A stretch of DNA of 63,080 bases, counting the filler, from Intoshia linei (lineage: Eukaryota; Animalia; Orthonectida): the NCBI GenBank assembly GCA_001642005.1. It is 7 parts of 7 records of this genome, joined end to end, with 100 filler letters (N's around TTAATTAATTAA, not from the genome) between each part and the next. Parts side by side here need not be neighbours in the genome. Positions count along the whole stretch, not along the records: positions 1 to 15,316 come from LWCA01000914.1; 6 more parts are not named here. One strand, 5' to 3'. The notes under the pieces were generated by a model. The model did no database searches. It worked only from the letters and a program-made list of their open reading frames with translations, and was not told the origin of the DNA. Positions 1-15,316 of this stretch are shown piece by piece. How positions within the stretch are numbered: the first letter of the stretch is position 1; every line of letters begins with the position of its first letter. The translations under genes were made by a program, and so were the position numbers.

Positions 1-558
1 CCCAATGGAAGCTGTGATTTTAGATCAGATGCTGTCATAAATGGGTCTTTTTTGACAAACGTATCAAAAATCTCCTCTCTCTGGCATGTAAAACATGTGG
101 ACGTCCTGATCTCTGTCTATATTTGAGAGGAATACCATTTTTATGTTTTTTTATTATTTCTTGAACTGCACATCTCAATATTGAGAGCTTTCGGGCAATT
201 TTTGTCTGCTGGTAACATTTTTTGTAAAAATTGACTATTAATTTCATTTTTTCTATGCTAATTTGTGGCATCTGTAGTGTCTAATATTCTTATAACTATA
301 ATAAAAATTATTTGCATACCAATGAAGAATAAACGGTTAAAAATAGCAAGAGCCTAAAACTTTTGCACGGTAAATATGGACGATATTTATTAAATTATTG
401 ATACAATGTTGTTGTTAAGGTAATAATTAATTAAGAAAGATGGAATGTGATGACTTGTTATTTTACAATATTTATAGTCAAAAATATCATGAAAAAACGT
501 TGTCTTTTAGGAACCAGAACCTTTTATCAAAGGTGCCTAAAACTTTTGCACGGGTTTG
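1..558 (-). mobile_element. Tc1/mariner (IR/DR-type) transposon, 5' end with truncated transposase N-terminus
   Basis: ORF 35..271(-) has a paired-type HTH and an RSGRP motif. The terminus reads TA|CAAACCCGTGCAAAAGTTTTAGGC on the - strand. A 19-bp direct repeat gcctaaaacttttgcacgg occurs at 352-370 and 535-553. Confidence 0.85.
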
Positions 559-1117
559 TAAAACGAAATAATAAGATTAGACTCATTATTACCTGTTATC
601 TCTATATTTAAGATGTATTGGTAGGTTATTGATGTTTAATTTAGAAATGTAATGTCGCATTACAGGTTTAATATGTGTTTTAATATAATCATTGATTGGT
701 TCTCCTATCACATCAAAACTCAACATAAAAAATTTCTTTAGTAGGTTTAAATACAGGTTCTTTAACCTTTTCATAATTATTTTTTTGCCATTTTCTGTTC
801 AGATACTACGTTGTGTAGCTTTCCATTGTCTGGTATTGTTGTTCATTGAATAAATTAGTATTAAACCTATAAATGATTCAATGTTGGAATGTTTAATATT
901 ATCAAAATTATGATCATTAATCAGTTGCGTATATGTTGAATCAGATATGACTTACTGTTCGATTTGCTGGTACCAGCAAATTTTAATAAGTCACATATTA
1001 TTTATTAAAATTAAAAGTATTTACGGCCCGGTATTTAAATATATTTTTGCATACATTATTTACATACATATATTCTATGAATGTCATTATTTATATATTT
1101 TATTAACATGTATTTAG

Positions 1118-1246
1118 GATTTGGGAGCATCACATGATTCAACAAAAGAATGTTTAGCACTTATGATTCAAAAAATCGAAGGAGCTGAGTATTCTGATTT
1201 GTATGAATATTGCCTTGAAAAAATTAAAAAGTTGCATTCGGAATGA
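1118..1246 (+). CDS. Probable terminal exon of an unidentified gene whose 5' part lies upstream
   Basis: The tatttag acceptor is followed by an open frame DLGASHDSTKECLALMIQKIEGAEYSDLYEYCLEKIKKLHSE*, richer in G+C than its flanks. No family recognised. Confidence 0.45.
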   Translation, partial: DLGASHDSTKECLALMIQKIEGAEYSDLYEYCLEKIKKLHSE

Positions 1247-1565
1247 TTTGTACATAAAATTAAATATTATATCTTTATTTACAAACATTGTTGATATATA
1301 CCTTTATTTGTATTTATTGATTTGTTTACTAATATATTTCTTCATAATCCAAATACTGTTATTGGATTAATGATGTTAAGCTTATATTTTTTTTAATTTT
1401 TCGAAATTATTAAAACTTAAAGTAGCAAAATATTGGGTTCAGACTTTTTTAAATTTAAATTTATGTTTGGAATCAATTCCAAAAATGAACATTAATATTT
1501 TAATTTTGAAATTTATTATTATTGACATAGTTGCTATTCTAATTTTACAATATCAATAACAAAGA

Positions 1566-4500
1566 ATGCGTTTCTCCCAATTTATAGTTATCGTATTGGT
1601 GGTTACTTTTTACGGTATGTTTACCTTTTAAATTTTTTAAATAGTGTTTGTATTTAAAGCGTTTAAATATTTTATAAATATAATTAAAATCGTTAAATAA
1701 CATTGAAATATAAATTTAAATTTTAAAATATATTTGTGACAATAAAGAGTTCCTGTGTACCAGGTCTGCTTTATTTGCTTATAGCGGTGTTTCTAAAAAT
1801 CTTTGCTGACGGCTTTTTGAAATTAAAATTTTGCAGTAATTCGAAAAATAAGAATTTACAGCAGTTTCATATTTTTTGATATTTCAATATTGCTAATGGA
1901 CATAAAATCCACCCTTAAATGGCCATAACTGTCAGTTGAAATTAAAAATGTTTCTTTTTATTAATCATTTAATTAGCTCAAAATGTTACAATTAACAACA
2001 ATACAAATACGTTAAATGCTACACACAGTGAGGTTCAACCGGGTAGTAGTAATAATACTTCAATAAAACCAATCGCTGCGAAAGGTATTTTAATTTATTT
2101 TTATTGTACAAAATAATGTTAAATATGGATTTATTATAATTATAATATCTATACATGTACTTTTTATGGTGTCATAATTTTACACTGCAATATAGTTGTA
2201 TATTTTAGTTCCATATATTGCTAGTAAGTTTACATTATGATAAAAATAGATCTGAACTCAAGATCTCGAATTATACCGCTATATAGAACGTTGAAATGAT
2301 TGAATTATAATATACTTGACTAAATTATAAAAATAGTTTGTAAATTAAATATTTTTATTTGTTAAAAAAATATTCTGTTCATAAAATTATAATTTCATTT
2401 AGTTTGTAATTTATTATTTAAAATATTGTTTAATTACAGATTAGTTTACAATTAAATCTTCATTAGTTGAGTTTTTCATTATCTTTTCAAAATGTTTAAA
2501 AATGTACATTATATATTATTCGTGCACCATTAATACATATATTAAAATTTCACGATAGATACTTCACCAAGACATTAATAATATAGCCTATTTTTCCTTA
2601 GTAAAGCTGCTAAAATTTAGAAAGTACCTGAGAAAAGGATGAAGTGAAATATACTATTTTATTTTTCGTATGATCATACGATATAATATTATAATACAAC
2701 GATTTGGGAAAACTATGGTGTGCGAGTCTTTTTTTTTTCTTTCACATATGATATTTTTATTCATTTTTGATTTTAATAAATAAAACCACAAATAAAGGTT
2801 GACGATTTAAAACATTTTAATCAATTTTTTTAAATTGTGACAGTAATGACTCAATATACTATTGTGATGTATAATCATTAAATATCTATTAACAGCTTGT
2901 AAATAAATTTTTTATTATTTATAATTAATTGGTATTAATTAATACATAATTTATAACTATTTTTTAATAATAATTACATTTTTTATGTTTAGTTGTTTCT
3001 AGTCATAAAAATATCTTTAAAATTCTTAGATGGTAACATACTCCTAGTATTTTAATTAGATTTTAGTAACCAATTTACATTATTATAAATTATTTAAATT
3101 TTAATCATTTTTATTTATAGTTAGTAATATTAATATAAATACATACTTTTTAAACCTTACGAAACAATTGCATGTATAGATGCCAAAAACTACACTCATA
3201 AATTTACCATAACTCATAATTATTACGCGACGTAATTGTAATTACGTGTCATAAATTAAATATATTTTATTGCTAATTCTAAGCCTAATTTAAGTTATTC
3301 ACTTTACAAATCAATGACATTTGAAATTTCTAAATTTTAAACTTTAAATTTTAATGTTTTTTAACATTTCAAAAGTAAAATTTTTTGCTTTCAATTTTGA
3401 AAATCAGCATAGTCTCGTAAAGGTTAATATTTGTATAATTTCAAATTTTAATTCAATAATAACGACTCAATGCACTGAGTAGTACAGTCTAAGTCCTTAT
3501 TAACGGAACTTGAAAATTACGTAATTCCGTTAATATGGAATTTCCCCCATAGTAAAACCGTTGTTAACAAAATTTAATTTTTTTAAATAAAAACCATTAA
3601 ATGGTCACATTTCTTGTTATTATGAGTTTTTGAATAATACATGACGAAGTAATATACACAAAAAATTATCAACGGGTACATGTGGACTCCTGGGCCCACA
3701 GCAGTTTTTGGGGTCCATGAAAAATTTTATAAATTTTAAAATTATTTACAGAAATAAAATAAGGTTGAAAATGATATTTCCGCAATGATAGTAATTATTT
3801 CTAATTAACGTCATCTAATTTAATATCTATTACAAATTTGATAAAAAATAGAATAAATTGACTTCTTAATAGTACCAAAATTAGTTTATATTTATGATAG
3901 TCATTAAAAATAGATTCTAGAGATATTTTTATTATCGGAATTTTTGGTTTATACAAATTCGTTAAAAAAAAATGAATAATTCAAAATTCCGTTAATAAGG
4001 AATTAGAACAGGGGTGCACAACCTTTCCATCAATTCAGCCGCAAAGTTACTTTAGTCATTGATTTATTGATTAGTCATTCACTACGGCCACACAAAATAT
4101 AATTTGACATTGAGAGAGTTTAAATCCAATTTGAGAAAGTGTTGAAAGTAACATTTTGATAAAAATATTTCCCTTGAATTTGATGTAAAATGATATATTG
4201 CATTATGATTACATGGATTGTCCACAGTCGCACATACACTCTATCACAGCCATATGCGTATGCATATGCCATCTAAGGTGGCAGGTTGTGTACCCCTGAC
4301 TTAGACTACTAAGTTTGTATACTATATTACATTTTCGGTATAAATTTTCAATACGATCTATTAATCTGATTATAATTATTATTATTATTGCATTATTAGC
4401 ATTCTATTATTATTATTATTATTATTAGATATTTTATATATCCAATTATAATACTTATGCGTTTCACTTTTATCTATATTTTGAGTATAGATTAATTATA

Positions 4501-7500
4501 TTAAGATGGTAAAAATAACAACATTTTTTACATACATATATTGTATACTACATCATGTATTTAATTGTATATTTTAAAAGGTTATAAAAAATAATTTTTC
4601 TACTTAGTTAGTAAAAATTTAATTAATATCAAACTCATTATATTTGGAATTTAAATCTCATAATTTTAACATATAATTAATCTTTATATTAATTGTTTTG
4701 GATGGATAGTCGGTAATTAAAAGTATTTTAAGATTTTCAATTATCTTCTAAAAATATTTAACTTCAAACTGGCAGATTCATTTGAAGTTTCAGTCAATAT
4801 AAATAATTGTAATAAGAAAACGTTTATTTTACTGTCTAATGCAGGGTGAACAACCTTTTCACCAATTCAGCCACAAAGCTCCTTTACTTATTGATAATAC
4901 CGACCGCACAAAATTTACTTTGATATTAAGAACGTCTAAATCCATTTAGAGAAAGTGATCTAAGTCAAAAATGTAACTTTTTGATAAAAATATTTTAAAT
5001 TGAACTTGAATAAAATCTTATTTAAACTTTTCCAATTTGACGTAAAATGGTCTATTTCATTGCACAATAAATCAACCAAAAAATTTAAATTAAGTCATTT
5101 TAATGAGTTTATAGATGCCAATATTTTAACATGCTGTAATAATTAAATTAATTACACACATAAATAATAATGTAAATTTTCTATCGTATGAAAAACTTGA
5201 ATCGGTCCAAAGAAATATTATAAACATAATAATGGCTGTACTTCTAAGTCACTTATATTCCCTTGTGATTGATAAAAATTTATTTTGCTGTATTGTTCGG
5301 AAACGTTTATTATGAATATACGATTTAAATAAACAAATATGTCATTTTCCAATTAATTTATATTAAATATTTGCAGAATGTAAATTTTTGATGGCTATTT
5401 ATTAACATGTAAATATAATAAAAATTGAATTTATCTGACTATTCAAAATGAATAATATATGATCATAGTTGGTAAATTAATGTTAATATTGTATACCTTT
5501 TAAGTAATTTGTCTATTTTGTACTATGTACAAAAATTAGATAAATCTGTAGAGAGCTAATCATAATTAATTATTAAAAAACAATGTAATTCAAATTCAAG
5601 AAAAATTATTGTATTCATTATATACATTGTAATTTACCTGTCGTCTGTCATCTGTGTTATGTATTTTTTGTTTTGAAAAATTTGCAATTTAATTAAAAAA
5701 ATAGATATTTTTGTAAATTTGTTGATTGTAAAATTGACTTGGTTTGTAAATCATTAACAATTTGGCAAATAATAATGTATATAACTTTATTGGCTCATTT
5801 AAAAATTGAAATGGATTCGATTAAAACTTACGAGGGAAAAATTCATTTGAACAGCAGGAAAAACTATCTAATTCTAGTAAAATGAGTATTTGTTAGCTTA
5901 GGTTTTTAAATAAATGATTACATACAAACATTCATTATTATATGTCAGGATAAGGTCCTTATTAATTTTATTTTATTGTAATTAATATTGTAGGGTTTAT
6001 TAATTTTGAAAACTGTCAATTTACTTTTTGTATGTCTTTTTGTTGGACTCCATTTTAATCCGAGACATTTCTTCATAAAATCGTCACTTTTCCTAGATTT
6101 TTCGGGAATTATGTTAATTAATTTTACCATTTTTATAGTGATTTAAGCTAGCACCTAAGCAAACATTTTAAAAGGTAGATTTAGGTTTTTTAACAATTTT
6201 TGTAAATAAAGAATTCAAAATTTTTACTATTTTGTTATTTTTTTGTGTGCAAATTTTTTCAATTGCTATCTAGTGCGATCTAATGGAAAAAATGTTGAGA
6301 AATATTAATTTAGATGTACATTATTATACTAATATGTATAGTTGGTAAATTTTTATACATATACAGAGTGTTAATTCTTCAAAAAATAAAATTATTATAA
6401 CAAACGAGATATAGTAGTTTTAATTGCAAATTAATATTTCTGTAGCACGTAAATTTCATTTTTAATTATGTTTTTGATATTTAGTTACAATGATAATGAT
6501 GAAGCATTATCGTGAATGATAAATTAATACATTTAATATATTTTTACAGTTGGTAATTTTTATACGGAAAACTTTTCAGAGTTTGTTTATTCAACATTGA
6601 TGATACTCAAAATTTTTTTGGAAAAATCAATTGTCCTGATTGAATGACTTTTCTATAGGCTTAATAAAATATATTTGATTATACTGTTGATAAACAAATT
6701 AACTTGATGTTGTTTATAAACACTACGTACGAGATATTATATTATAATAATAATAATTATTATTATTATTATCGATATTGTAAATAATAAATAAATAATA
6801 TCTAAAAGCTAAATGTTTAAATTATGTACGCACCAATATGTTCCTAATATTTATAGTGAGTAAGTATCATTAACGATAAAACTATGAGTACTTAGATATG
6901 TATAATTATGTTAAACTTTAACTATATAATTTAGTGAGTAAATATAATATTATGCATTAAATATACAAAGTTTTATCCATTAATTTTGATAAAATAATAT
7001 TTACAGTCTTGCATTAGAGGGATTAGCATCTCAGATATACAGGGGAAAAATTATTTCTTACGTTATTAAATCATTATTCAACAATATGTAATTTTAGCCG
7101 GTAAAGTTTAAAAAAATTATGTACCTAAGTTAACAATACAATTTTTTATTCTATGAGCTTTCACTAAATGTAATCATTTTTTAATATATACTTATATAGG
7201 ATGTAAAATATATTTATACCATACAATCTAGTAAAGAGGTTCATAAACTCATTTTGTCTACCTCCCCCTTTTTAGCAATATATTTTGCAAATCAACGGCC
7301 CTTTAAAAACGTTTTTCTATTGTGAGTGTTAATTGTGATCATCACTTGACTAAAAAAGTTATAACTTACGTTTTAGGGTCGTTCATTTGATGTTTAAATT
7401 TAAACTGTCTGATAACATTTAAAATTTAACTTTTGTTTTTTATTTATGTCTAAAAATATTGAAAATCTTTTTACATTGGAAACTTTTAATTTATTTATTT

Positions 7501-10500
7501 AAATTAATTGAATAATGTCATTTAATATTTATTTGGTTATAGCTGGTATGATTTTATTCCATTTGCCTTAAACTTTTAATAATTTTATAATTAACCTATA
7601 ATTTGAATGTTTAGGATGTAAACTTTTAAATGGCATTTATTTAAATACCGTGGAGCCTTGCTATTCGTCATTTCCGTATTTTGCTAAAAAACTTCCGTTC
7701 CAGCAAAAAATTGTTCAAAATAAAAAAATGAAGTTTCTCAAACTATAAAATTAATTGTATTTGAGCCATTCTCTAGCAAATAAAATATAAATATTTCAAT
7801 TTAAGTGACCTACAGGAAATAATATTCAAGACTCATACTCATGGATAAACTTAAAATCCGCGTATGACAGTGTTCAACATGGTTATTTTCTATATTTTAC
7901 ATATAAGTAAATACTAAAACGTAAATTTACAGTTAAAAACCGTTACGGCATTACGCGCAAAAAATATAATAAAATTTTAAGATCTGTTTTTTGATGATTC
8001 TTGTGAATATTTGATTAATTAAGGTTTTGTAATTGATTGAATAGTGAGATAAGAACATAGTTAACAGACATTTCCGAAATTCAATAAGATATATTCTTCT
8101 AATTAGACTATAAATTTGATTCAAAACGCATAAAATGTTACGGTGTTACAAAATGAACTTATTATTTCTGTTATACATTTATGGTATTAATAAATTGTAA
8201 ATTATAACCACAAAACAGCGCTTCACCTCTATGTTCTGATAAATTAACACTTTAATTACAATTAATATAAATATAACTATATAATTTCAATTAACACAAA
8301 TAATTAGATATTTGAATAATTTACTCATGTTTTTAAATTCTAATCGCATCATGTTTACGCATATTCGATAGAGTTTAATTTTCTGATTATTACCTTGTAC
8401 TGTGATTACTTTTTTAGTCAACATTGGCGTAATTATGATGCATTCCTTTTGATAATATATTTTAAAATATAGTATATTTTATTTTTTTATGTCATAATAT
8501 CTTAATAGAGCCTTAATATTAAATTTTCTATAATAATTTTGTAATATCCTGAAAATATATGAATCAAACTAACAAACAACGTAAAAATAAATATGATATC
8601 ATATAATTTAAATTTATCGTTTTTTTTAATTTATGACAGAGAATGGCTCATTTAGTTATGTAAAAAATATAAATACCATGTCGAATAGGAGTATTTACTG
8701 TAGTTAAAATATAAGAAAAATGGAATTATTTCAAATTAATTTAATTGAAATGTTTCATTAATTATACATGTTAATTATATTATTGTATATATTTTATTGT
8801 TAATAACATATTTTTCATAGTATGTAATGTTTTTATTTGATAGTTTTACTGTCATAAATTGTGATACAGAGATATTATTTTTTCTAACGTGTAGTAATGA
8901 AGATGGATACGTTAGTGATAATGACGTTATTATTGATATTATACATGTATTATTACATATATTATCTCTATTGATAAAGTAATGTTTCCAACCAATTTAA
9001 AATCATTTTTAACATTTTAATTAGAATGTTCATGAATATTCAAAAATGGTCATAGAACATTTTTTCAAAATTGGATTAAATGATTAATTAGTTGTAAACG
9101 TGTTTCTATTAGTTATATTATATTTATATTAATATATTTTATTAAACAGTTCGTAATTTTCATTAAAAATATAAAAGATACAAGAAAAAAGATAAAATAT
9201 GCCATTTCACATTCTTGAAATAATGTATTACATGTACACTAGGGTTATTATATTTTGATTAATTTTTGAAATTTTAAAATGAGGTATAAAGAAATGAGCC
9301 TTGATTAATTTGCTTCAAAATGATATGAATATTTTCGTTTTTGGTCTATATATAAAATACGTTCATGTTCAATTAATAATGGTTATTGTACTTTAGTTGG
9401 TATATTAAATAAATTAAAAATGTATGTAAAACAAGTTGTACTAACAATAAAAACAACGCGCCAGGAATCGTTAATTAATGTGCTAATACAGGATAATTTA
9501 TCAACTGAATTATGCCCAGTATCGAGCATAGGCACAAATAATTTCCAAAAATTTTATTCAATAATATTACAAAGATACGGAATCTTTTAAATGTAATAAA
9601 TTAGGACTCCTAATGGATAGAAATACTGATTCCTGCGTTATAGTATTTAAATTGTTTAAAATGATAAATTTTCTAGGCTGTAATTAAATATAAATTAATA
9701 TACAAAAGTTTACAATATCATTTATATTAAAATAAGTATTTATTATACATACATGTGTCACATATGTTTGTGACATTAAGGTGTTAACTTTTTTCTAAGA
9801 ACATAAATACAGGGTCATACAGGATGAGAAAAAAAATCTAAGAAAGGTGATAGTAATTTTGAATTAAGAATCATTTCTATATATAAATCACTAAGGAATA
9901 TGATAAAAAAGTTAAATTTTTTAATTTCACTGTTAGATTCAATTAACACAGGTCAAGATGTATGTAAATATTTATAATAACTATGCAACTGTATAAAATA
10001 AGTAAAAATTCATCATTTTTGGATATATTTTTAAAAGGTGGTTTTATCATTCATATGTGGATAAATTCAAAAATCAAACACATAATTCTTATTTATTTTG
10101 AGAATAATACGAACGTATGCTAATCGTCATGCAAAATGTTATTATAAAAAAATGTACATTGTACATTTTATGCAACTGAATTTAAATTTAATATTCCATT
10201 TATAGCAAATAGTAATATATAAACTTAATAAATTAATGACTTTATTGTTTAATATCAATTATAAAATATATAATTATAATGTATATTTTAATTTATTTAT
10301 GAAAGATTTATAAATTAAATAATTAAATTTATCCAAATCTATTAGTCAGTAAATTAATTTTATATTTAATGTATTTTTTGCAATAAAAATGATAATACAT
10401 GATGTATATTAAGACATTACACATAATATATTTAGTTAGTAAAAATATATGAATTAATTAATAAAAAATTTCACATACGATTAAAATTTACTACAGGGTG

Positions 10501-13500
10501 TTCATTAGGGGTATTCCAATTTGTAATTTTTTTGAAATTTAGAAGACATATATAGCTAATAATCTTAATTTAATTTGCTGCAGAATAATATAAACGAATC
10601 ACTGAAATCTAGTGAATGTTTCGATTCAGCTGATTATATACCATTAGTGCTTCCGGTTACTTGTAATCTTAGTTGTCTGAAATTTTGTTGAAAATCACAT
10701 TGGAATACAAAATCACCCGTACAAACCTAATCATGCAAAATTATAATAATCTTTCTATTTTTAGCGAATTTATAGGACATTTTGATAAAAATTTAAAACA
10801 AATTATTTGAGAATGTCTGCATTATTCGATACTATAAATATTTAATTTTTTTATCAATTACATTGTACAATTGTAATTTATTCATTTGTAGAAGGTAAAT
10901 CATTTTAAAAAAATCATATCTATTGTAATAATTATTAAATAAACTAATTAATATTATTAAGTTAATAATTACATCATGATAACTTTCAAATATTAATTAT
11001 ATATTTTGAATATTCCCTCAAGATGGTAATTTAATAATACCAAGAAGATTTATATGCAGTCAAAGTTGTTTTTTACAGTTTTAACAAATTTTATTTCCAT
11101 TACAATTGCATTCAACCTGTAGTTGGTAAATTCGATTTTATTAATATATTTACATACATAATAATATAATATAAATACTTAATTTACAAATGATTCAACC
11201 TAGGACGTAAATTATAAAAATTTTAATTATAATTGTCCGGATATTAACGGTCAAGGGAGAACTTCCCTCTGTTATACATCTAATTATTAATGTATATAAA
11301 ATATGTAGTTAGTAAATATTTAATAATTTTATAATATTTTTATAATTGTAATAAATGAACATTGTTTTATTGTTTAAAATATTTTATTTTAATTAAATAG
11401 TGAGTAATTAGAAATATTTTATAAAAATACAAATCAAATTATTAAACAACTATCATTTTAGTATGTATTGCATTATTATATTAAATATATAATAATAAAC
11501 ATTTTTAAACATAATAATTCAAATGATTAATCAAACGTTAATATATTTAATGCACGAATTATGTACATTGAAGCTCTACTAATGATGTTTCAAAAGTATT
11601 AAGAAAGCTAAAATTATAGCCTACATTGAAAATTTGACTACATTTTGTAATAAGACCCTCAACCGAGAAAAAGAAATTAACAATATAACTACGTTTATTA
11701 TTAATAAATAATATTTATGTTTTATTATCAATTTAAATATATATATATATATAATAGCTCGTAATTTTAATATTAACTTTAATAAAATATATATAAATTT
11801 GATGGGTTTTAGACAGAGCTGGCTGACATGCTAGTACCATCAGTAGTACCAGCTGATGACAGCTGTCTACCAGCAATATAATATTTTTAAAAAAAAATTT
11901 AACATTTTTTGAGCGATGTATTAATTTCACATGATAATTATAAATAAATTTTCTCATTGCCTGTACTTTACTTGACCAATGGAAAATTGTAACTAGTAAT
12001 TTAAATAACTATTACTATTTTGTCTCGCATGCAGAGCCGTTATAAGGCATGGACAATATGGGCTGTAGCCCGGAGTCACTCATTAAAAAAGGCCCTAATT
12101 AATAAAAGTACTTTACATTTTTATCTTAAAATTTTTTGTTACTGCATGGTGCATATTTCAAATGAAAAAGTAAACTTTGTTTATTAGTTAGGTAAGTTTT
12201 TGTATAAGAAATAAAATTTATTAAAAACCTACGTAATATCTTTTAATGCTTTTATTAATACTCAATAAAATAAGACTCTAAGTCTCCAACCAACAGTATG
12301 CCCTGTCTTCTAAAAAGGGGCCCTAAATTTTTTTATCGCTTCGCTCGAAATGGTTTTATGCTTCGCCCAGAGGCACGAAGTGGCTTAAGATGACTCTGCT
12401 CGCATGTCCACTCTCCTTATTTTATCGCAATCTTACGTTAAAATTGTAGATAGAGTATATCTTCTCGAATAAATTATCAAATCATCACAATACACGGTCA
12501 ACGATGTTTTTCTAAAATTACTTTACGCTAACCTTTAATTTACAATACTAAATAAGTTTTAAACTTGTAATTTAAAAAATCTTAACATTTCGATTTCATA
12601 TACCGTCAAACCTATGATTTTCCTAATTAATTTTTATTTACAAATAATAAATTTCTAAATGTTAATAAAATTACTAATTTTTCAATTCATAATAGTATTT
12701 TTATTATTTGCGATCAGCTGTATTGATATATTGTATTCAATAAAGCTAGTGCAATCCATGGTTTTAGATAATAACTATTCAATTTTTTTAGTGCGTAAAT
12801 TTTTGTTATGTTTTTAATTTTACTTTCAAATACGTTATTATACAAATGAATATTAAAGTAATTGGTGTTATATTTATTAATATATTTTTTAAACACATGT
12901 ATACTGTAATAAAACTGTTTATATTAAACTGGTATATTTAAACACTGTTCATTTGTACAATTACTTTCACTCTTAAAGTGTATTTTCATATTAAATTCTG
13001 ATAAACCCTCTTTATATCTTAATCAATATTACATATACATAAATATTTTTAGTGTGTAAATATATATTATGATTTATAAATAATAAATATTAACAGAGTA
13101 AATATTGTAAATATTATACTCATTGTGTTACATAATGTATTTCAGTAATTTTTAAATTTTAGTGAGTATATTATATATGAATTATTAATAATATTTTTGT
13201 ATTACATATTTTAAATATGTTGAAAATTATATTAAATATATTAGTGGGTATAAAATATGTATCAATAATAATAATACATTTATTATGTATTAAACCATTT
13301 ATATTAGTAATATAATATTACTAATATACGCATTTAAATTATACAATATTTTCTATTATTAATAATATATCATAAAGTCCGTAATGTTCCATTTTCAATT
13401 TAAAAAAATTAGTGATATTGTATTATAATAATAATAAAATATCAAATTTATTTTTAATATTAAATAGCAAGTAAATAATACATGCAAATAATTTTGTATT

Positions 13501-14480
13501 ATTTATATCATGTATATATTATATATAGTGTACATCAGGGATCGGAAACCAGTTGCCCGCGGGCCAACAGAATAATTTTAGTGATCCTTTGAGTAAATAT
13601 TTTAACTATTTATTTTTAAATTTTTCAACTTTAAAACATCGTTTTAAACAATTTCTGCTATAATTAGCTGATTATAATTATTTTAATACTGAATTTTCAG
13701 ATCGTCCCGAATTTTATTTTGTTGAATATACTAGATATCCTCTTCTGTTCAATTGAAATCTATCATGTGTAAATTTTCAAAAATAGGCCCATATAATTTT
13801 TTGATATAAAAAAGTGGTAAACAAGATGAAAAAGGTTCCCGAGCCCTGGTGTACAGTGTACGACATTTAATAATCATTGTGTAACCAATTACCTGTCATG
13901 TGTATCTGATTCATTATAATGGATTATAAATGATATGATTTAAAGTCAAAATAGTTTCGATAAATTAAATGTAATTTTCATAAAGTAAAATTTACATTAT
14001 AATGATTCACCCAAAAAATAAATAACTCAACATTGTATTACTATTTGGATATGTAGGAAGTTATTATGATTATAATTATAATGGATTATGAAATAAAAGA
14101 AATATAAAAAAAAAATATATTTGAAATTTTAGTAATTAAATATTTATCTAATATTATAAATTTAAATTCTGAATTTCATAAAAAAATGCAGCAAGAGAAT
14201 CACTCGAAAACTAAATTTGTAGTTAAAATATTAATTATTGGTGTACCCCTAAAAATTAATAAAATGGCCCCAATTGGTTAGTTTATTTATATTTATCGAC
14301 ATAAATATGTATGATATAAATATGCATTTCAATTTACTAGTTTGTAATTCATTTTTTTTATTTATTATGTTGATTTTATTTTTTTAATCGTACTATTCTA
14401 TAAATTTTATGAAATTTATGTTAGCGAGTAAATTACTATTTTCAAATTACTAAAAATATTAAATATATTTTATATAGTTT
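1566..14480 (+). CDS. Candidate micro-exon gene: signal-peptide-like exon, 15-nt exon and about 42 three-nucleotide exons; small hydrophobic protein; 3' end not seen
   Basis: Exon 1 is 1566-1614 (MRFSQFIVIVLVVTFY+G, donor gtatgt). Exon 2 is 2209-2223 (ttttag|...|gtaagt). A dense + strand series of AG|NNN|GTA units runs from 2337 to 14480. Concatenated in phase 1, they contain no stop codon. Confidence 0.65.
3485..4308. mobile_element. pogo/Tigger-like non-autonomous TIR element
   Basis: Left end TA|cagtctaagtccttattaacggaa. Right TIR ttccgttaataagg..acttagact, split by a hAT insertion. Confidence 0.7.
4009..4298. mobile_element. hAT (Charlie/Buster-like) MITE nested in the right TIR of the pogo-like element
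   Basis: TIRs caggggtgcacaacc / ggttgtgtacccctg. Degenerate 8-bp TSD aattagaa/acttagac. A truncated related copy starts at 4842. Confidence 0.8.
12032..12398. mobile_element. hAT-type MITE
   Basis: TIRs cagagccgttataag / cttaagatgactctg. Perfect 8-bp TSD ctcgcatg at 12024-12031 and 12399-12406. Confidence 0.85.
13536..13848. mobile_element. hAT-type MITE
   Basis: TIRs cagggatcggaaacc / ggttcccgagccctg. TSD gtgtacat/gtgtacag (7/8 match). Confidence 0.8.
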
Positions 14481-14517
14481 GTAAGTTTTGATATACATAA
14501 TTTGATGTATATCAATA

Positions 14518-15316
14518 CACTACGTTCCAAATTATTAGGTAAGTGTTGAAATGTGGCATTTCACTGCTTTAAAACTGTTAAAATTTAACAATTTTTTTTA
14601 CGTTAACTCGTAGACCTTGTGAAAGAACATCTTCGAAATTTCAGAAAAATAGTAAAATTATTTGACGAGTTTTTAAAATATATTGGTTTTTGACCGTTCC
14701 AAATTATTAGGTAAGTTATACAATTGATCACTTTAACTTATTAATTGTTCTTGAAAAACATAAATATTTATCACAAAATAACATTTAATGTTATATAATT
14801 AAATTAAATTAAACTAATTAAACAAACAACACTATAAAAAAAGAAATATATTATTTAGTAATTGATGTAGTCACCTTGGTTTTCTACGATCTTCAGAAAT
14901 CTATTGTCCATTGACCCGGTCAACATTTTTATTTGTACTGGGTTAATGGACTTTGCAGCATCTACAATTACACACCCCAGGTCATTTGCGCTGGAATACT
15001 GAGTGTTGTTTGAATATACTACTCTTTTTATGATTGACCACATATTTTCAATGCAGTTGAGATCAGGGGACAAAGCCGGCCAAACCATTAATTTTTCGTT
15101 TTTGAAATGCTTTGATGCTAGAACCGATTTGGTATCATTAGCTGAGTGACATGGTGCATTGTCTTGCATAAAAACTAGACCCCTTTTGAACTTTTGTGTC
15201 TGTCGAGAATACCATGGAAAGAAATTGTCATTTAAAAACTGGATATACGTGAAACTATCGACTCTAGCCCCTGCAGTGTGTCTAAATGGTCCAACAAGCT
15301 TATCACCTACAATTGC
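14518..15316 (-). mobile_element. Tc1-like transposon, 3' part with DDE transposase C-terminus (runs into gap)
   Basis: ORF 14855..15169(-) contains QDNAPCH and WPALSPDLNCIENMW motifs. Terminus TA|CACTACGTTCCAAATTATTAGGTAAGT, with an inner direct repeat at 14695-14716. Confidence 0.92.

Follow-up and report, generated by a model that had tools for sequence, protein, structure and literature searches.

Can a protein be encoded mostly in exons of three nucleotides (nt)? This question is raised by a locus of the orthonectid Intoshia linei (assembly GCA_001642005.1), contained in a window of 63,080 nt, by which we mean the whole stretch of DNA analysed here, composed of seven joined parts. The first part (window 1–15316) is the entire contig LWCA01000914.1, has a GC content of 20–28%, and carries on its plus strand a long array of AG-NNN-GTA motifs, in which a presumptive acceptor AG and a presumptive donor GTA are three bases apart. 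A preliminary description of this DNA had interpreted the intervening triplets as micro-exons, which, following an exon that ends one base into a codon, would be translated in phase 1 (i.e., with each codon combining the last base of one exon with the first two bases of the next) into a stop-free, strongly hydrophobic peptide. That interpretation is partly supported by our analysis. The array is reasonably likely to represent the 5' part of a real, unannotated and extreme micro-exon gene, the predicted product of which is a hydrophobic protein bearing a signal peptide. Genome searches covered the organism's own 41.6-Mb assembly of 3520 contigs, and, unless another scope is given, counts refer to the first part of the window.

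Motifs with a spacing of three bases

The pattern is a certain property of the DNA. AG-NNN-GTA is found 45 times on the plus strand and 9 times on the minus strand, compared with 8.6 ± 2.8 occurrences (maximum 17) in dinucleotide-preserving shuffles. When the distance between AG and GTA was varied from 0 to 24 nt, three was the only spacing enriched: TAG-N3-GTAA occurs 30 times at this spacing and at most 4 times at any other spacing or on the opposite strand. More stringent forms of the motif sharpen the asymmetry, with 39 plus-strand and 4 minus-strand matches to YAG-N3-GTAW, and 20 and 0 matches, respectively, to TAG-N3-GTAAWT. Neither zero spacing (8 plus-strand versus 10 minus-strand sites) nor exon lengths of 6 to 30 nt nor non-GTA donors are enriched in this part of the window. 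AT-rich DNA does abound in AG and GTA words, and 8–9 matches are expected per strand, but chance accounts neither for 45 matches at a single spacing on a single strand nor for the genome-wide excess over a reversed-pattern control, clustered on particular contigs, which is described below; the counts refute this explanation, which we consider practically untenable.

Aligned on the triplet, 42 sites yield a logo of the splice type, T-A-G / NNN / G-T-A-A-W-T. Position -3 is T in 35 of the 42 sites and is followed by an invariant AG, and on the donor side GTA is followed by A at +4 (37/42), A or T at +5 and T at +6 (29/42); G at donor +5 is rare (3/42 here and 18/200 at other loci). No conservation is seen further out among the 42 aligned sites. 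Neighbouring sites are 53–1385 nt apart (median 110), and the 2.3 kb preceding the array contain no plus-strand AG-N3-GTA site, nor is there any 5' of the predicted first exon. The array motifs are very likely splice sites, judging from this logo. The donors of three larger exons of the window read gtatgt, gtattt and gtaagt.

The same arrangement recurs elsewhere in the genome. A two-site pattern (TAG-N3-GTAA, a gap, and TAG-N3-GTAA), searched alongside its reversed form as a control, gave 72 matches versus 26 in the control for gaps of 78–100 nt and 119 versus 39 for gaps of 47–77 nt; a three-site pattern gave 7 versus 0. Because the matches pile up on a single strand of particular contigs (C516, C970, C1017, C1037, C1522, C1593, C1697, C2327, C2340, C2698 and others), they suggest the existence of some 20–30 unrelated array loci. 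The densest of these arrays lie on C1593, C1017, C1037, C1428, C1522, C1697 and C2698. Among thirty 3-kb loci, many contain 9–21 sites on one strand and 0–3 on the other, and 200 sites in 16 other loci produce the same logo as those of the window. Cross-comparison showed the array loci to be unrelated, the sole common piece being a transposon fragment (window 13562–13848). At the DNA level, the window gene is thus one of a genome-wide class of approximately 20–30 unrelated loci with the same architecture.

We considered whether such arrays might have nothing to do with splicing and instead be the footprint of a mobile or duplicative process (GTAA...TAG elements producing a 3-bp target duplication), a decayed tandem repeat, or a series of protein-binding sites. 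The intron ends, GTAAA...TTTAG, do form near inverted repeats, a perfect 218-nt tandem duplication at one of the other loci (L031) includes a triplet, and identical adjacent triplets are found 9 times versus 5.9 expected. However, this excess is not significant (p = 0.12), and the equal triplets that should flank each spacer are not seen. Comparison of the spacers with each other revealed no resemblance beyond the AT-rich background, save for an unrelated transposon fragment, and no tandem repeat of a matching period was found in the array. Nor would a mobile footprint explain the phase-specific depletion of stop codons or the start of the array behind a signal-peptide-type exon, both described in the next section, and we regard this explanation as quite improbable. 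More specific candidates were also rejected: introners or other transposon-derived introns (self- and cross-comparison gave only background matches of 58–65% in AT-rich sequence, in both orientations), target duplication by introners (no significant enrichment of identical neighbouring triplets), a decayed satellite (no matching period), a known RNA family (no Rfam match in the array), and recursive splice sites of zero length, as judged from the strand counts at zero spacing.

The predicted gene and its reading phase

The splice-type sites can be assembled into the following predicted gene, to which three further AG-N3-GTA matches that lie outside the model are appended.

Window 1566–1614, plus strand: exon 1, 49 nt, comprising 16 codons from the ATG plus one base and ending in phase 1; donor gtatgt.
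Window 1977–2084, plus strand: probable exon 2, 108 nt, 36 codons, symmetric; acceptor ttag, donor gtattt.
Window 2209–2223, plus strand: putative 15-nt exon, tag / 15 nt / gtaagt; phase 1 in and out.
Window 2337–9679, plus strand: block 1 of predicted 3-nt exons (n = 23), YAG or AAG / NNN / GTA(A/T); first bases 2337, 2403, 2896, 3030, 3121, 4506, 4608, 4710, 5377, 5469, 6342, 6446, 6550, 6857, 6935, 7098, 7200, 7543, 7615, 8821, 9150, 9397 and 9677.
Window 9952–9963, plus strand: putative 12-nt exon, cag / 12 nt / gtaaat; encodes a polar stretch.
Window 10206–10211, plus strand: putative 6-nt exon, tag / 6 nt / gtaata.
Window 10346–14480, plus strand: block 2 of predicted 3-nt exons (n = 19), beyond which lie a Tc1-type insertion and then the contig end; first bases 10346, 10436, 10892, 11023, 11123, 11204, 11309, 11401, 11462, 11758, 12792, 13053, 13163, 13245, 13378, 13468, 14341, 14425 and 14478.
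Window 2621–2623, plus strand: match outside the model, AAA; would create a phase-1 stop if included; atypical donor gtacct.
Window 4314–4316, plus strand: match outside the model, TTT; poor acceptor aag where a transposon-like element ends.
Window 6861–6863, plus strand: match outside the model, TAA; overlaps the site at 6857.

In this model, the exons of 108, 15, 12 and 6 nt and the 42 exons of 3 nt are all multiples of three and all in phase 1. The introns range from 50 to approximately 1400 nt across the gene; those of block 1 measure 63–1382 nt, with transposon-like insertions in the long ones, and the shortest in block 2 are 50 and 58 nt. The C at donor +4 that sets apart the match at 2621 occurs at none of the 42 window sites and at 6 of 200 sites elsewhere.

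Exon 1, which indeed stops one base into a codon, has an A at position -3 of its ATG and seems to encode a signal-peptide-like N-terminus, with a basic residue followed by a hydrophobic core (best 10-residue hydropathy, 3.45). Between it and the 15-nt exon, the preliminary description had probably missed the 108-nt exon, so that its peptide was not complete. This probable exon 2 is open solely in phase 1, the phase given by exon 1, and passes on the same phase; among random stretches of 108 nt, 4% are open in any one phase. Its GC content is 34%, versus 23% in the flank, and its translation contains five N-x-S/T sequons, which would make it a segment rich in N-glycosylation sites; a Pfam search with exon 2 gave no match. 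From here on, the chain of the 15-nt exon, the 42 triplets and the 12- and 6-nt exons, read in phase 1, reproduces the peptide described earlier, with no stop over 53 micro-exon codons. The details reported for this chain were recovered as well: four triplets are TGA (6857, 6935, 11401 and 13163), 26 of the 42 begin with T, and the five that begin with AA or GA are never preceded by an exon ending in T. The three longer micro-exons fit into the stop-free chain, but their length classes are not enriched; since this holds for the 15-nt class, the 15-nt exon is placed by the quality of its sites and by the frame. A further candidate of the same length at 12718–12732 (plus strand; cag / 15 nt / gtattc), open in phase 1 and located in a long intron, could be an extra exon. 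Two other 15-nt candidates, at 4794 and 10648, would each make a stop with the next triplet.

Several independent statistics, all of them drawn from the sequence, speak for translation in phase 1. We pooled the junctions of adjacent triplets over 16 loci and compared their stop codons with those obtained under permuted triplet orders. Phase-1 junctions contain 3 stops in 191, against 9.6 ± 2.4 expected (p between 0.002 and 0.005), and the depletion persists when the window is excluded (3/153 versus 8.2 expected, p = 0.012). No depletion is seen in phase 0, in which 18 of 207 triplets are stops, or in phase 2, in which stops are as frequent as by chance (14/191), and the stop counts differ between the phases (Fisher p = 0.0012). 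Likewise, stops are not depleted at junctions that would arise by skipping one exon (8/175 versus 9.0 expected) or two exons (6/159 versus 8.1 expected), and the pooled arrays thus give no sign of a design that tolerates skipping. Depletion confined to adjacent triplets is what constitutive joining of neighbours combined with translation in phase 1 predicts. In the window, exons 1 and 2 set this phase, and when exons were drawn at random from the background composition, only 0.7% of trials gave a stop-free chain.

Base composition points in the same direction. A model of codon-position composition, built from three presumptive coding open reading frames of the same genome, favours phase 1 at the other loci by 28.5 nats, and by 14.7 nats when the donor-adjacent base is left out. 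The preliminary description had made its reading depend on the bias towards T at the first triplet base, and this bias is stronger here than at the same kind of sites in other arrays (25/39, or 64%, versus 58/168, or 35%; p = 0.001). Across loci, the share of T at this base varies from 0.08 to 0.70, and such dependence on the locus fits the second codon position of different proteins rather than a splice signal.

The predicted product, as far as the contig extends, has 105 residues, including one cysteine. The micro-exon part has a mean hydropathy of 1.50 in phase 1 and includes, as had been proposed, two hydrophobic stretches that exceed a Kyte-Doolittle value of 1.6 over 19 residues, with the polar residues of the 12- and 6-nt exons between them. 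We infer from hydropathy a hydrophobic protein with two transmembrane-like stretches, probably embedded in a membrane; the same profile would be compatible with a helix-loop-helix topology.

Several observations weigh against a translated gene, and some of them lend weight to alternatives. Approximately 4–9 of the plus-strand matches may be due to chance, and the 6-, 12- and 15-nt exons lack statistical support. The permutation of exon order suggested earlier as a check is weak for the window by itself, where 18% of random triplet orders are also stop-free, and it is in the pool of 16 loci that the depletion emerges; even there, three phase-1 stops persist. The reference set for composition is small and itself only presumptive. 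The exon 2 peptide (35 residues), compared with 1.84 billion representative sequences, returned 0 matches. The gene is incomplete, running into a Tc1-type insertion and then the contig end before any stop codon, which would lie beyond. Steric limits on the splicing of 3-nt exons are a real concern, and a literature search found no precedent for runs of tens of consecutive 3-nt exons, nor any orthonectid report of such runs.

In one alternative, the splice sites would be genuine but the triplets would be kept in an RNA that is not translated, be it a long non-coding RNA, an untranslated region or the outcome of stepwise, recursive-type removal of a very long intron, with the open frame as a by-product. 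The splice logo and the strand coherence need no coding, the order test in the window is weak, and the search with exon 2 gave no homologue. Against this stand the confinement of stop depletion to phase 1 and to adjacent junctions, the fit of composition to codon positions, the gene-specific first base, the phase-1 entry into the array by way of an ATG exon and an exon open in that phase only, and the lack of enrichment of the zero spacing typical of classical ratchet points. On this evidence, we consider untranslated RNA unlikely. The arrays may also be decaying relics, left by former micro-exon genes or by failed intron gain and no longer expressed, as could be surmised from the residual phase-1 stops, the many transposon insertions in the spacers and the fruitless protein search with exon 2. 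Yet nearly all sites preserve the splice logo, the depletion of stops can still be measured, and the window chain is open throughout its micro-exon codons, and to us decay appears improbable. A translated micro-exon gene thus remains the reading we favour, and for the class as a whole we lean somewhat towards proteins encoded mostly in 3-nt exons, dozens in a row, in phase 1 and constitutively joined in genomic order.

Predicted splicing and known micro-exon systems

If the model is correct, the coding sequence after exons 1 and 2 would be carried by no fewer than 45 consecutive micro-exons, of which 42 measure 3 nt. With all introns in phase 1, each triplet would open with the last two positions of one codon and end with the first position of the next. 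Every intron, of the form GTAAWT...TAG, is short enough for intron definition and would presumably be recognised singly in this way. A 3-nt exon would fall wholly within the U1 footprint, with the upstream AG only 3 nt away; for this reason, its two flanking introns could hardly be engaged simultaneously, and their sequential removal is probable. Such ordered removal would be akin to recursive splicing, except that 3 nt would be retained at each step. Given that the triplet is constrained by coding, the uniform donor GTAAWT may compensate for it.

At Drosophila ratchet points, a 3' splice site directly abuts a 5' splice site within a long intron, which is removed stepwise; zero bases separate AG from GT, and nothing is left in the mRNA. 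The window sites resemble ratchet points in that the acceptor adjoins the donor, implying ordered stepwise removal. Unlike in ratchet points, AG and GT are here exactly 3 nt apart, and the triplet cannot be removed by a regenerated donor; the sites do not take the ratchet form of AG followed at zero length by GTRAGT.

Two kinds of micro-exon gene offer parallels in layout. Micro-exon genes (MEGs) of Schistosoma consist of a signal-peptide exon followed by very short symmetric exons with much longer introns; they have 10–20 exons of 6–81 bp, mostly 15 bp, encode small secreted products, and are poorly annotated by gene finders (10.1101/2023.06.21.545858). Like these, the window gene as modelled has a signal-peptide-type 5' exon and the bulk of its coding sequence in very short symmetric exons, the two features by which it can be classed as MEG-like; the likeness drawn here is one of layout. 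Unlike Schistosoma MEGs, it would have at least 45 internal exons, 42 of 3 nt, and a strongly hydrophobic product. The bicycle effector genes of aphids and their relatives likewise combine an N-terminal signal peptide with many micro-exons, almost all internal exons starting from codon position 2, and comprise approximately 5–25 micro-exons, whereas megacycle genes have more than 100 for approximately 2000 residues (PMC9168663; 10.1101/2020.10.28.359562). The predicted internal exons of the window gene also start at codon position 2; those of megacycle genes, in contrast, are approximately 20 times longer, and the paired CYC motif of bicycle proteins has no counterpart in the 105-residue model, which covers the 5' part of the gene and contains no C-Y-C. 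At 41.6 Mb, the assembly is much smaller than would be expected of a hemipteran. Isolated 3-nt micro-exons are known from ordinary genes, such as RPS24, and from surveys of plants, Drosophila and mouse, demonstrating that the spliceosome can include them (PMC12686416, PMC8831610, PMC8042270, PMC7821500). Whereas those occur singly or in small numbers, the window gene would have tens in succession, making up most of its coding sequence.

If this holds, no more extreme case of exon fragmentation would be known, and it would imply obligatory, ordered and ratchet-like splicing that adds 3 nt per step; splicing as predicted would set a new lower limit for the splitting of coding sequence. The array loci would offer a natural test bed for the behaviour of the spliceosome at exons smaller than the U1 footprint and 3 nt from the acceptor. 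Entire genes of this kind could evade annotation, as gene finders have no models for 3-nt exons and aligners cannot place them. The phase shared with aphid bicycle genes and the MEG-like layout, in the genome of a possible parasite, raise the question of repeated origin and, more generally, of whether extreme micro-exon genes recur in secreted or surface proteins behind phase-1 signal-peptide introns.

Surroundings of the array and observations at other loci

Two fragments of Tc1/mariner-type transposases mark the ends of the contig, which was probably broken in assembly at these two repeats:

Window 35–271, minus strand: Tc1/mariner-type transposase fragment, weak helix-turn-helix match, at the contig end.
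Window 14855–15169, minus strand: Tc1/mariner-type transposase fragment, DDE_3 (E = 1.8e-9), inside an intron of the micro-exon gene.

A transposase fragment used as a query matched only a broad range of eukaryotic sequences, and a Logan search with it gave two matches at 52–58%.

Upstream of the predicted gene, an open frame of 42 codons (window 1118–1246, plus strand), preceded by a tatttag acceptor and ending in TGA 320 nt before the ATG of exon 1, looks like the terminal exon of another gene; a Pfam search with this candidate gave no match.

At two other loci, the arrays show peculiarities of their own. The duplication at L031 (positions 1080–1515 of the locus) is a perfect tandem repeat of 218 nt (100% identity) that carries one micro-exon (CGA) and its intron, and is either a very recent in-frame addition of 3 nt or an assembly artefact; tandem duplication is accordingly a possible route of array growth. 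At L022, array sites flank an ATG exon (854–923, plus strand) that has a hydrophobic start, beginning M-R-F, like that of the window gene, and a GTA donor in phase 1. This exon may belong to another such gene arranged in tandem; it came from a scan for signal-peptide-like first exons that is unspecific in AT-rich DNA.

The long spacers of the arrays are attributable to inserted mobile elements. The transposon-like element at window 13562–13848, of approximately 290 nt, has copies in the spacers of several unrelated micro-exon arrays (L005, L012, L014, L026 and L027), with identities of 75–85%. A second repeat forms a pair within the array (window 3768–4196 and 4588–5021). Finally, the intron of 1031 nt that separates the triplets at 11758 and 12792 contains, at window positions of approximately 11800–12420, a GC-richer island (28% versus approximately 20%) with palindromic stretches, which is probably another inserted element.

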